A stretch of DNA of 64,000 nucleotides from contig JAMWBK010000004.1 of NCBI GenBank assembly GCA_029953675.1, forward strand, positions 930,001-994,000. Direction: 5' to 3'. The position numbers and the translations under genes were made by a program. Positions within the stretch are counted from its first letter, which is position 1, and every line of letters begins with the position of its first letter. The notes under the pieces were generated by a model. That model ran no database searches. It had not been told where the DNA came from and saw only the letters and a program-made list of their open reading frames with translations. Origin of the DNA: Rhodosorus marinus CCMP1338. Its lineage: Eukaryota > Plantae > Rhodophyta. This document shows positions 6,293 to 24,527 of the stretch, piece by piece.

Positions 6293-6300
6293 TATAAAAG
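6293..6300 (+). promoter_or_regulatory. TATA box of microprotein copy 1 (equivalents at 9406, 13552, 18509, 24199)
   Basis: TATAAAAG 116-131 nt upstream of the ATG in all five intact copies. Confidence 0.75.
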
Positions 6301-6417
6301 GACTTCGAGCACAAACTCGAGGTTGGAGGTGGTGGTAGAAACCATACACAACGAACAGGGGACAGAGAAAGAGACAAGCAAGTTATAGAGAGATAGACAA
6401 CGAATATAAAAGCAACA

Positions 6418-6621
6418 ATGGTACACTTCAGGAAAGATTCTGAGCACAAGGTCGACGAGGACTACATGCACGACAACGAGCACCACCGGTTCCATGGGCT
6501 AGAGACGCTTAGTGGTGTGTTCCACAGACCTCACGACGAGGAGCACGAGAAGATCAAGGGCGAGAAAGCGATGTTCAGCTGGCTATGGGTGGAGCACAAC
6601 CCCTACAAGGGATTTTTGTAA
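6418..6621 (+). CDS. His/acid-rich 67-aa microprotein, copy 1 (unknown family)
   Basis: MVHFRK...HDNEHHRFHGL..LSGVFHR.H...MFSWLWVEHNPYKG; frame and length conserved in 5 copies, TATA box and caacaATGG context. Confidence 0.8.
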   Translation: MVHFRKDSEHKVDEDYMHDNEHHRFHGLETLSGVFHRPHDEEHEKIKGEKAMFSWLWVEHNPYKGFL

Positions 6622-7287
6622 AGCTTTGTGACGCGCATGGAACTAACGACGCTTTTGCCATAGACAGTTTGCGGGCGTGTGGTTGCTGCAGCCGTGTAAC
6701 AATGTAATTGTGATAAGATTGTAATAGAAGCTGTGATTGAAAGACAAGAGTTCGAGGTGCACTCAGTAGAGGCTTATAAGGGCCAGTTTTTCGTATGGTC
6801 TTTACACCTGAGTCGAATCAGCATATGAATAAAAAATAGAGAAAGTTTTGACATCAATGGTACTGACGCCAGAGACTGGAGTCATGTCGTTGGGCAATTT
6901 CGTTGAGGTAGAGCATGGAACCTTTGCTAACGATATGGGGAGCCCAGTACCTGCGTCTGTCATCAGAGGGCGAGCTCTCTGCATCAACACCGTCCGTACA
7001 CCGTCTTGGATGTCGATTAAGCTTGGTCGAACAGAGTGTAGTCGTCACGCCGTAAATATTCTAGCCACGCAGCACGTACTAACAATCCGACGAAGAGCTG
7101 AAACATCTGTGCCCGATTCCCTAGCGGGTGCTGTGACGTTACATACTTTAACGCGCGTTATAGAAAATTTAAATTCCCCCCATATCAGGTCGATCCCGAT
7201 CAACACCAAGTAAGAAATATGCCAAATAAACTCGTCACACAATCTCCCAGTGAGCATTGATTACTTTTCGTGCTGAAGGCAGTGCTA

Positions 7288-8140
7288 GGAGCTCACGCAC
7301 TGATGTGATTCAGCATAGCCTCACCTGGGGCCAACGCAGTGCAGCTCACGCAATCTTGCTCAAATCTCTCCTACACCGCCTACCACCGCCGCTCGCCTCC
7401 GCGGCCTGGGAGTCCATCTATCGCACGTGTGGTTAACCACTCTGCCTTCGTCACTGGGACACCGTCTCGACGCCTTCCAGTTCCGCGCTTCCGCAAAGCC
7501 TTACCTGGGTTTGCCACAAGCTCCGTGGCACTCTAATCGGCAGTCTTCCTGTCAGGGATGTGAGAGTTGGATTGACCCGTGTGGTTACCACTTCTTAGGT
7601 TCATGCGGATTGTTGAGAGGTCTTCGTACGAGGCGTCACACTCGCCTCAAGTACATTCTGAGCGAATCTTTGACTCGAGTAGGGCATACGGTTGAGGTGG
7701 AATCGGAACAACCCAGATCGGTCTCGGACACGGCACCGCCTCGATGCACTGCAGATGTCCTCGTCTCCGACACTGCCGCCAGTCCTCAGCATATGTGGAC
7801 TTCGCGATCACATGCCATGTGGCAAGCGCTCATCTCAGCTCAAGGCAGACTGGCCATACTCTCAGCATACCTTCGTTCTTTCACTCGGCGAAGGGCAGAC
7901 GCGGTTGCTCCTCGGCGACGGGCGGCATGCGGAACTGTTTTGCTCAGCATCCTATGGAATGCTTGGAACTCTTACGCCGTTTCAGTGTCGCCCTGTGGCG
8001 ATATTCTAGCAGCATGCTTGCCGAGGCGCGCCATCCACGCTTGGGTTTCCGTGTTTCTCTCCGTAGGTCTTAGTTACAGTGCACGCCTTGCGCAGTGCGT
8101 CAGGCTATGCTAGTAAAAACGAGTGAAAACCAGTAACGAC
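7288..8140 (+). mobile_element. CRE-like family A, 5'-truncated copy with internal inversion
   Basis: ORF 7427..8113 (CQGCESWIDPCGYHFLGSC...RRHTRLK); 7835-7927 is reverse-complement of the RLE segment; family A 3' end at ~8100-8140. Confidence 0.88.
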
Positions 8141-22290: not shown

Positions 22291-22320
22291 CTTTCAGTCT
22301 CCGGTTAAACCAATTCGTTC
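22291..22320 (+). mobile_element. 30-nt family B tail-only insertion with 9-bp TSD
   Basis: ctttcagtctccggttaaaccaattcgttc flanked by agactatgt (22282-22290, 22321-22329). Confidence 0.8.
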
Positions 22321-22337
22321 AGACTATGTAAGTCAAA

Positions 22338-23215
22338 CCAGACGCTCAGCATATGTTGACCTCGCGATTACATGCCTTGTGGCAAGCGCCCATCTCACGG
22401 CTGCCGCCCACCACCGGGGAGCAGCCGCTTCGGCCCTTCGACGAGTGAAGGAACGACGGTATGCTGAGAGCATGGCCAGTCTGCCTCGCGGTGCGAGGGT
22501 CGCTCCCACCGGTTCCAGCCTTTCATTGTGGAAAGCTTTGGTCACGTGGAGAAGGCGGGTTTGGAGTGGTTGCGGAGATGTGCACTGAGCATCCTGTTGA
22601 ATACTTAGAACTTTTGCGGCGTTTAAGTGTCTCTCTGTGGCGATATTCGAGCAGCATGCTTGCCGAGGCGCGCCATCGGCGCCTGGGTTTGCACGCTTCC
22701 TTCCCTAGTTCTTAGTTCCTTTTCATGCCTTGCGTAGCGCTTTAGGCTATGCTAATAAAGTCCAGTCCAATAAAGCCAGTAAAACATATGCCTGCCCTGT
22801 GGCGAGCGCCCACCTCACGGCTGCCGCCCGCCGCCGAGGGGTAGCCGCTTCGGATGTTCGACGAGTGAAGGAACGACGGTATGCTGAGAGCATGGCCAGT
22901 CTGCCCTACGCCACTCCCACCAGTTCCAGCCTTTCATTGTGGAAGTTTTGGTCATGTGGAAAGGTCGGGTTTAGAGTGGTTGCGGAAATGTTTCGCTCAG
23001 CATCCTACTGGGTACTTAGCGCTTTTACGGCGTTTGAGTGCCGCCCTGTGGCGATATTCTAGGAGCATGCTTACCGAGGCACGCCATCGGCGCCTGGGTT
23101 TGCACGCTTCCCTCACTAGTTCCTAGTTCCTTTTCCCGCCTTGCGTAGCGTTTCAGGCTATGCTAATAAAGTCCAGTCCAATAAAGCCAGCCAGTAAAGC
23201 CCAGTAAGACCCATC
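22338..23215 (+). mobile_element. Two head-to-tail family A 3' fragments (~22338-22785, ~22786-23215)
   Basis: Each has ...VKERRYAESMASLP...RRLGLHAS* and tail gctatgctaataaagtccagtccaataaagccag. Confidence 0.88.
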
Positions 23216-24323
23216 ACCGCTCAGTGGAATGGACAGTCTGTCCGAGACAGGTTGTCCTCTGGAATGATTGAATAAACGAACAAATTAATTCCGAAAATCG
23301 AACATTAGGTTTTCCGAAGAAAATATTCCGTTTCTAAAAATGGACCTCTTGCGCTTCCCATTTTTTTCTGTTTTATTTAATATTCAATTGGGACAATAAA
23401 AGGACGCAAAGTTCCATTGTCCCACAGCAGCGCGAAGGTAGACGCTGCCAGGGTCAGACAATAGGAGATGGTGGTCGCTCGACAAAACTATCAGATAGCA
23501 ATTAAGTGGAAAGATCAGGTGAGAGAGGGGACCGTCTTTGCTGGCGGTATTCCAGCGGGATGAAATACATCCGCACTAGGCAGCATTTACCGACGAAGCG
23601 ATCGACACTGTCAGCACTTCCGATTGATTCCCCGACGGTGGCTTCCAAGGAGATGGAAATTCGGACTGCCTTTTTTTGAAGCCTTTTGGTGGAAAATCGA
23701 GAAGGATCGCGAAACAACGGGCTCAGTTCTTGTTGCAGTCATTTTACTCCTGCACGATTGCTGTCCAGACAGCACCATCGGTGTCCGTTGTTGGTCTTGT
23801 TTACCACGAACAACAACAAATAGACGGTTCCATATTGTGAAAAGAAGTTTCGGACAATACCTGTAGCGGTGAATCTGTAGAGAGCGATGGAATCCTCCCA
23901 AACCGGTTAAAAAAAATATGTAGGGAAGGGTACAAGGTTCATATTTGTCATTTTCCATCAGTGAACCTAATGCTCCGAACTGAAAGGTTGGATTCCTGTC
24001 ATTGTCAGGATCCATGGAGCAATTTAATGCATTCCCTGAATTCAACAAGTGCTGATCGACCCCTTTTCTCCTCCCATGTGGACCTCTACACGGTATAGAC
24101 CTCCGCCGACTTGCAAGTTCTCGACATCCTCTGCGACCTAGTCGGAAGAAATGCGTTAGCGTTTGTCCTGCTCGACCCGAATGTCTCCTTCCGAAGACTA
24201 TAAAAGGCTTTCGAGGACTATCTCAAGGGTATATTTGACGTTGAAAGCCATCGAAAACAAACAGGAGACGGAGTAAGAGGCAAACAGGGTACTTAAAGAT
24301 AAACAACAATTATTACAGCAACG

Positions 24324-24527
24324 ATGGTACACTTCAGGAAAATTTCTGAGCAGACGCTCGACGACGAGTACATGCATGACAAGGAACATCACGGGTTCCA
24401 CGGACTGCAGCGACTGAGCGATGTCTTCCACAAGTATCACAACGAAGATCACGACCAGGTGACGGACAAGAAATCGACGTTCAGTTGGCTGTGGGTCAAG
24501 CACAACCCCTACAGTGGACTCGTATAA
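24324..24527 (+). CDS. His/acid-rich microprotein, copy 7 (67 aa, most diverged intact copy)
   Basis: MVHFRKISEQ...FSWLWVKHNPYSGLV; TATAAAAG at 24199. Confidence 0.78.
   Translation: MVHFRKISEQTLDDEYMHDKEHHGFHGLQRLSDVFHKYHNEDHDQVTDKKSTFSWLWVKHNPYSGLV

Follow-up and report, generated by a model that had tools for sequence, protein, structure and literature searches.

A Rhodosorus-restricted tandem family of histidine-rich microprotein genes and its candidate role in metal binding or stress

Several groups of proteins already described resemble, in one property or another, the small gene family reported here. The dehydrins are Lys-rich proteins, with His-rich KS-type members such as AtHIRD11 of Arabidopsis. 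The histatins are salivary proteins, secreted and cationic, which are released from a signal-peptide precursor, and the human genes HTN1 and HTN3 are neighbouring paralogues. Among the nickel-storage proteins of Helicobacter pylori, Hpn has pairs of Cys and runs of poly-His, and its His content is about 47%. Hydrophilins are delimited by a hydrophilicity index above 1 together with a Gly content above 6%, and the amino-terminal Cu- and Ni-binding (ATCUN) motif requires His as the third residue of a free N-terminus. In this report, we describe a tandem array of genes for His-rich proteins of 67-69 residues in nuclear DNA from Rhodosorus marinus CCMP1338. The DNA analysed, hereafter the window, is a stretch of 64,000 nucleotides (contig JAMWBK010000004.1, 930,001-994,000, assembly GCA_029953675.1), to which the first copy was placed by exact match. 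The strain is a red alga of the Stylonematophyceae, with an assembly of 31 Mb and 8392 BRAKER gene models (PMC10250338).

Our favoured explanation is that these are orphan mini-genes encoding a disordered, metal-binding stress protein, and for this reading as a whole we would give roughly even odds (about 0.5). The description of the genes themselves is held, taken jointly, with high confidence: this is a Rhodosorus-restricted family of nuclear, intronless mini-genes, its sense open reading frame (ORF) has evolved as a translated and selected frame, and tandem segmental duplication enlarged the family into an array which is now being eroded by non-LTR (lacking long terminal repeats) retrotransposon insertions and pseudogenisation.

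The array and its transcription unit

A sequence-only reading of the window had listed five intact ORFs and two pseudogenes, and the same five were found by ORF listing and by tblastn, all on the + strand, along with degenerate copies at 11256 and about 20268. Beyond these, tblastn with copy 1 gave no further copy in the 64-kb window. The array in the window (5241..24850, +; self-blastn, tblastn) thus comprises seven units, which are separated by retroelement fragments and, because of them, unevenly spaced at 1.6-5.0 kb, so that the proposed arrangement of one copy per uniform unit of about 2.2 kb had to be given up. A sixth intact copy, c0 (67 aa), lies 17 kb upstream of the window at contig positions 912,993-913,196 (L003 10001-10204), and is followed, still upstream of the window, by a truncated unit that retains only the promoter (L003 11741-13051); the array is therefore not confined to the window. 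In total, it covers 41 kb or more and comprises at least six intact genes, two pseudogenes and one truncated unit, counts which are lower bounds, as the contig stretch 923,197-926,417 lay outside the DNA examined.

The transcription unit of copy 1 (c1; 6293..6833, +) begins with TATAAAAG at 6293-6300, and continues through the leader and the coding sequence (CDS) at 6418-6621 (67 aa) to AATAAA at 6828-6833. The same elements are found on the + strand in c2 (9406..9918; TATA 9406, CDS 9522-9731, 69 aa, AATAAA 9913), c4 (13552..14100; TATA 13552, CDS 13678-13881, 67 aa, AATAAA 14095) and c5 (18509..19070; TATA 18509, CDS 18640-18843, 67 aa, AATAAA 19065). In c7 (24199..24527, +), which is the second most divergent intact copy of the window after c5, the TATA box lies at 24199 and the CDS at 24324-24527 (67 aa). 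Only c0, c1 and c7 appear in the deposited annotation, each as a BRAKER 'hypothetical protein' (c0 being KAJ8905605.1, 'hypothetical protein NDN08_002111', 93% identical to c1), and c2, c4 and c5 are not annotated. The pseudogene p3 (11131..11654, +; tblastn, alignment) has TACAAAAG at 11131, a dead CDS at 11256-11458 and AATAAA at 11649; its lesions are a 1-nt deletion causing a frameshift, one in-frame TAG and changes of Trp to Arg. The second pseudogene, p6 (20219..20458, +; tblastn, self-blastn), has no TATA box, and in its dead CDS (about 20268-20458) the start ATG has become CTG (CTG GCA), accompanied by stops and indels; its homology stops at a retroelement fragment that begins at 20478.

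The anatomy of the unit was derived from alignments of six window units with a 2.5-kb genomic Logan contig (run SRR32518360) carrying a related 67-aa ORF, P0002, and, over a longer span, of six CCMP1338 units including c0. The unit consists of a TATAAAAG TATA box, a purine-rich 5' untranslated region (UTR) of about 90 nt, an intronless ORF of 67-69 codons, a 3'UTR of about 200 nt, and AATAAA. The TATA-like element had been placed 116-131 nt upstream of each intact copy and followed by a conserved A-rich leader; the measured distances before the five ATGs are 125, 116, 126, 131 and 125 nt, and the leader is 66-74% purine, in agreement with both statements. Five of the six + strand occurrences of TATAAAAG in the 64 kb precede the intact copies, and six of eight leaders contain no upstream ATG. 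Identity stays at a plateau of 0.80-0.87 from the TATA box (-140) through the CDS, over a background of 0.55-0.70, and a second plateau of 0.72-0.79 runs from +250 to +430, where it ends at a conserved TGAATAAAA. In five window units, as in the Logan contig, the AATAAA signal stands 182-222 nt past the stop. That contig has the same layout of TATA box, leader, ORF and AATAAA, and its homology spans only about -440 to +406, that is, the promoter and the transcription unit.

As no splice donor is conserved and both the deposited models and that of MMETSP consist of one exon, the unit represents a complete mini-gene, with an mRNA of about 0.5 kb. The possibility that the ORF is an initial exon belonging to a longer spliced gene was rejected: no GT donor is conserved before the stop, the stop itself is conserved within 2 codons, the BRAKER and MMETSP models comprise one exon and 67-69 aa, and the AATAAA signal is reached some 200 nt farther on. 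Searches of the units with Rfam and for tRNA revealed no element inside them.

The ATG of the copies stands in the context CAACAATGG. All copies are identical, even at synonymous sites, over the opening 17 nt of the CDS (ATGGTACACTTCAGGAA; 6418-6434 in c1). Codon 8 (TCT) is likewise free of synonymous change in 7-8 copies, in a CDS where the proportion of synonymous differences (pS) is about 0.35 elsewhere. The invariant 17 nt suggest an additional, nucleotide-level constraint at the start codon, which may be an initiation context or a regulatory element. Farther upstream, about 310 nt before the ATG, the unit alignment contains a conserved palindrome, GAATTCnnnGAATTCAA, at 6108..6124 and also at 9226, 10951, 13372, 18337 and 24029; a search for it gave 12 matches against 0.9 expected. 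The upstream GAATTCnnnGAATTC palindrome was considered as a heat-shock element and dismissed on inspection, its spacing being incompatible with nGAAnnTTCnnGAAn.

Selection on the sense frame, distribution and array evolution

Across the seven intact nucleotide copies, the open frame, the start and the stop are all kept. The intact coding sequences had been described as free of indels within indel-rich flanks, and this holds: the CDS alignment has no gap opening at all, against 3-4.5 for each pair of sequences in flanking blocks of comparable size (130-190 columns), and identity is 0.79 in the CDS versus 0.40-0.73 in the flanks. The minimum numbers of changes at the three codon positions are 40/23/57 (chi-square p 7e-4), a periodicity from which the four flanking blocks, being flat, are free. 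Purifying selection, for which a dN/dS comparison had been proposed as a check, is likewise borne out. Pairwise Nei-Gojobori values of omega (the dN/dS ratio) range from 0.22 to 0.71, and a neighbour-joining tree with parsimony ancestors gives 45 synonymous and 97 non-synonymous changes, which corresponds to an omega of about 0.43, with a binomial p of 7e-6 by site counts and of 0.0016 with an expectation aware of transitions and transversions, all of these being counting methods applied to short sequences. In addition, about 4.5% of random changes create a stop, so that the chance of an open frame persisting over 142 changes is about 0.0014. The GC content of third codon positions is 0.66-0.78 in DNA of about 47% GC, and CAC, GAC, TTC and AAC are preferred at 81-94%, a bias stronger than that of the neighbouring PHO4, cyclin and C2 genes.

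An antisense ORF of 60-119 aa overlaps every copy and is longer than the sense ORF in c4 and c7, and the first 17 nt of the CDS do not vary even at synonymous sites, two points in favour of a rival reading in which the selected product would be the antisense protein or a non-coding RNA. However, the start, stop and length of the antisense frame are not conserved, and its substitutions by codon position read 57/23/40, with position 1 exceeding position 3, which is the wrong order for coding DNA. A search with the antisense protein finds no relatives, the MMETSP peptide is the sense product, and no Rfam match favours an RNA, all of which makes this alternative barely credible.

Constraint is distributed unevenly along the protein. 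The ratio of non-synonymous to synonymous differences (pN/pS) is 0.36 in residues 1-39, 0.99 in the charged linker of residues 40-52, 0.05 in residues 53-63 and 0.78 in the tail, so that selection bears most heavily on the Trp-rich C-terminal FSWLW(V/I)xHNPY (residues 53-63) rather than on the His-rich part in its entirety. The linker, which keeps its length and not its sequence, appears from these values to evolve neutrally. Such a pattern is what might be seen in an adaptor or regulator microprotein, in which FSWLWxxHNPY would be a short linear motif for one partner protein or complex, and the His-rich part would tune the interaction (e.g. as a pH sensor) or be incidental. Yet the motif has no known partner and no match in the Pfam, NCBIfam and PDB libraries, and it is unusual for stoichiometric regulators to be encoded in multi-copy arrays with pseudogenes; we regard an adaptor role as unlikely, while keeping it in the discussion.

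The family is confined, in the collections searched, to Rhodosorus and to Logan assemblies. A profile search had been suggested as the way to find relatives, and hmmsearch of 1.84 billion representative proteins returned the family's own cluster only. Apart from the query, P0002 was the only match of the single-sequence search; a search based on the alignment brought in c7 and P0005 as well, and in a word-indexed search of 5.8e9 the relatives came only from Rhodosorus or Logan. P0005 is a full-length peptide of 69 aa from the R. marinus transcriptome MMETSP0315 (CAMPEP_0184741364), a dataset listed in PMC5164836; it is 73% identical to c1, and thus documents transcription of one family member in another strain. 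The Logan copy sits inside the CCMP1338 paralogue tree as a sister to c0/c1, and hence the lineages of c2, c4, c5 and c7 predate that split. Its contig probably comes from a different strain or species, because no CCMP1338 copy is recorded from Logan.

Curated libraries offered no family. Pfam gave no match at E <= 10 for three of five copies, and only sub-threshold, unrelated DUF matches for the others; among individual matches, DUF6323 (E 3e-4; 20.9 bits, below the cutoff of 30.6) was hit by one copy only and judged spurious. An NCBIfam scan gave nothing significant, and a PDB profile search had no match at E <= 10. In the JGI metagenomes and IMG/VR, peptide-pattern and 17-mer scans as well as tblastn detected no relative; the 53 DNA matches to the peptide pattern or to the 17-mer ATGGTACACTTCAGGAA are attributed to chance, as tblastn shows no relative there. 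Literature searches on the accessions, the SRA run or Rhodosorus combined with histidine-rich returned no description, and the family is therefore new in being undescribed in the searchable literature, and already known in the form of hypothetical-protein database entries. Accordingly, the label 'unrecognised' stands as far as curated families are concerned, and fails in that three copies were deposited as BRAKER hypothetical proteins and one relative is present in MMETSP. The broader expectation of an undescribed system was not realised, as the locus contains an orphan gene family and no multi-component system.

Protein identity among the paralogues is 55-93%, and such divergence, together with the pseudogenes, indicates birth-and-death and not concerted evolution, as had been anticipated. 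The interspersed repeats belong to an abundant non-LTR retroelement with RVT_1, most copies of which are 5'-truncated; a fuller copy occupies about 37.1-40.6 kb (37086-40612, +; self-blastn, RVT_1). The 3' end of the element reads ...GGCTATGCTAATAAAGTCCAGT and bears short CCAGTAAAG-type repeats, and on inspection its C-terminal ORF region contains a Cys/His motif, after which comes a possible restriction-like endonuclease segment. Within the array, a 5'-truncated fragment lies between c1 and c2 (7288..8117, +; self-blastn), with the same 3' junction as at 5240, and because c1 and c2 share this junction of element and unit, their duplication postdates the insertion. Between c4 and c5 there is a retroelement-derived block (15691..17659, +; self-blastn) that is 98% identical to 642-1528. 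The fragments that cut p6 (20478..23190) include RVT_1 at 20648-21055 (- strand) and a duplicated 3' end of 411 bp at 22373-23190. Further fragments are located at 642-1528, 3665-5240, 32122-32468, 35832-36937 and 55015-55470. Site-specific targeting of the array by the transposable element (TE) was rejected, since the 3' flanks of the TE copies differ.

This interleaving of units and retroelement fragments raises the question of whether the ORF encodes no functional protein and is either a neutral rider on a segmental duplication or part of a transposon, be it as passenger or as internal ORF. The junction shared by c1 and c2, the TE 3'-end fragments that also occur near the Logan copy, and the apparently almost neutral state of some terminal branches would all be compatible with it. 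Against this, the other TE copies of the window (32.1-32.5, 35.8-40.6 and 55.0-55.5 kb) are without the ORF and have unrelated 3' flanks, and by tblastn the ORF is confined to the array within the 64-kb window and does not travel with the element. An omega below 1, the absence of indels, the codon periodicity and the codon bias, as well as the transcript-derived peptide of another strain, speak against neutrality, and we consider a passenger origin highly improbable.

The spacers hold tandem repeats of their own. A 112-bp repeat is present in 2.8 copies in the spacer after p3 (12018-12336), and single copies related to it are found after other units, at 7081-7201, 10146-10248, 14396-14520 and 1674-1858.

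Candidate functions

The family proteins are 67-69 aa in length, with a pI of 5.7-6.5, a grand average of hydropathy (GRAVY) of -1.08 to -1.28, 9-11 His (13-16%), 11-15 Asp/Glu and no Cys; copy 1 has the 10 His, 14 Asp/Glu and 0 Cys with which it had been credited. In eight sequences, 25 residues are invariant, including H3, H18, H23, H36, H39 and H60, so that the six invariant His of the earlier description are upheld, with F25, F35 and G65 proving variable once the additional members are included. The N-terminal M-V-H is invariant in 8/8 sequences, HxxH and HxxxH spacings are present, and the longest His run is HH. On inspection, the N-terminus is acidic and has no hydrophobic stretch, features that speak against a transit or signal peptide. 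AlphaFold2, run with a six-sequence alignment, returned a model with a predicted local distance difference test (pLDDT) score of 52.5, a predicted template modelling (pTM) score of 0.15 and a single helix at 43-59 bearing the MFSWLWV patch. The model suggests a chain that is disordered apart from a short C-terminal helix, and its low confidence may come in part from the shallow alignment.

From these properties, the following role can be proposed. The proteins are probably cytosolic, given the absence of a signal-peptide-like N-terminus, and would belong to the disordered proteins of the stress type, in which the six invariant His, the numerous Asp/Glu residues and the N-terminal M-V-H may serve to bind divalent transition metals (Zn/Cu/Ni) or to buffer them. 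Through its C-terminal Trp motif the protein would dock to the surface of a membrane, to a partner protein or to itself, and the number of gene copies, as counted, would raise dosage. The metal role is read from composition, from the HxxH/HxxxH spacings and from the M-V-H N-terminus, and this metal and stress mechanism, which is the inferred part of our explanation, is put forward as a tentative proposal. Still more doubtful is the stronger version, namely that the proteins constitute a Rhodosorus-specific class of metal or stress microprotein, combining a disordered His/carboxylate arm (with an N-terminal His-3 or His-2 Cu/Ni site) and a Trp docking motif, dosage-amplified in a tandem array and possibly born de novo.

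A number of points weigh against our favoured explanation. The His content of 13-16% is far below that of dedicated His-rich metal stores, and constraint is highest in the Trp motif and not in a His cluster. Val at position 2 favours removal of the initiator Met, which may alter the N-terminal metal site. Several terminal branches show many more non-synonymous than synonymous changes (10:1 in c4, 16:4 in c7), so that the constraint is moderate. Transcript support comes from a member in another strain that is 73% identical to c1, and the Logan contig could originate from another strain or species.

The same physical properties would also suit a metal-independent protectant of the LEA (late embryogenesis abundant), COR15 or hydrophilin type, acting in osmotic, desiccation or temperature stress, with the Trp helix as a membrane anchor. 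The strongly negative GRAVY, the low-confidence and largely unstructured model, the TATA-type promoter with its multi-copy array, and the hydrophobic MFSWLWV patch inside the sole predicted helix are all in keeping with such a role. On the other hand, none of the five copies matches a Pfam LEA or dehydrin profile, and of the two properties that delimit hydrophilins the proteins have the hydrophilicity and lack the glycine, with 2-4 Gly per 67-69 residues (3-6%). A protectant role would also leave the six invariant His unexplained, and is an explanation to which we give a low probability, the same as that of an adaptor and below that of the metal and stress mechanism.

Surrounding locus and comparison with known systems

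Downstream of the array, the window contains features of other kinds. A complete eukaryotic large subunit (LSU, 28S) rRNA gene (RF02543, model 1-3401, 2626 bits) occupies 26432-29658 on the - strand, 1.9 kb downstream of c7. It is flanked by retroelement-like repeats (25211-25430, 29730-29834) and looks isolated from a normal rDNA unit; the 64 kb revealed no small subunit (SSU) or 5.8S gene, not even when the threshold was relaxed beside the 28S gene. A tandem pair of small C2-domain proteins is encoded at 31389-32105 (+) and 34896-35543 (+), each with an N-terminal hydrophobic anchor, and the first of them ends in a poly-Pro tract (CCACCG repeat, 32052-32080). An intact gene for a phosphate transporter of the PHO4/PiT family (581 aa) is found at 45183-46928 (-), and its duplicate at 40594-41217 (-) retains the N-terminal ~190 aa only, being cut at the 3' end of a retroelement (40612); a 155-bp tandem repeat in three copies (41770-42240) adjoins this truncated gene. 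With a PHO80-like cyclin gene (59214-59924) within 13 kb of the transporter, these genes form a loose cluster of phosphate-related genes. An ORF of 685 aa (52002-54059, -) has a signal-peptide-like start and Cys-containing short repeats at its C-terminus (…CG..V.DG..CG…, …C.(I/V)P..C…), and has no Pfam match.

The value of the locus is local, and pertains to red-algal genomics and to the biology of orphan genes and microproteins; it opens no long-standing question. The published R. marinus annotation misses half of the intact copies (c2, c4 and c5), so that the locus corrects the gene catalogue, and it provides a clean, small example of how an orphan microprotein array evolves by birth-and-death while retrotransposons invade it. 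The 11-residue motif with a pN/pS of 0.05 is a concrete handle for finding a partner. If the metal or stress role were true, the family would provide an early-branching mesophilic red alga, from a group in which functional genetics is almost absent, with a metal-handling protein specific to its lineage.

When the family is set beside the systems named at the outset, its likeness to dehydrins, histatins, Hpn and LEA proteins is one of style only. With the His-rich KS-type dehydrins, such as AtHIRD11, it shares a small, hydrophilic, disordered, Cys-free and His-rich chain and a proposed metal or stress role, but it has no K-segment, no Pfam dehydrin match and no homology to them, and it is mildly acidic and carries a Trp-rich C-terminal motif. 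Like the histatins, the proteins are small and His-rich, are encoded by tandem, lineage-restricted genes, and have His at position 3 in the manner of an ATCUN Cu/Ni site; unlike them, they are acidic, without a signal peptide, and unrelated in sequence. Hpn and Hpn-like proteins are cytosolic, His-rich and of similar size (about 60-70 aa), with a presumed role in buffering metal, whereas the Rhodosorus proteins have 9-11 His per 67 residues, no run longer than HH, no Cys and no homologues among them, which sets them apart from His stores of the Hpn type. Metallothioneins, which are rich in Cys arranged in Cys-x-Cys or Cys-Cys clusters, are a separate matter, as every copy has 0 Cys. The COR15/LEA protectants offer a disordered chain, a helix-forming segment that possibly binds membranes, and the logic of multi-copy stress genes, but the family matches no LEA profile in Pfam, and has a 7-residue Trp cluster in place of a long amphipathic helix. 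The category to which the family does belong is that of orphan tandem microproteins, a category whose members share no sequence or function: it is found in one genus, its ORFs are short and intronless, and it forms an array with pseudogenes and a moderate omega.

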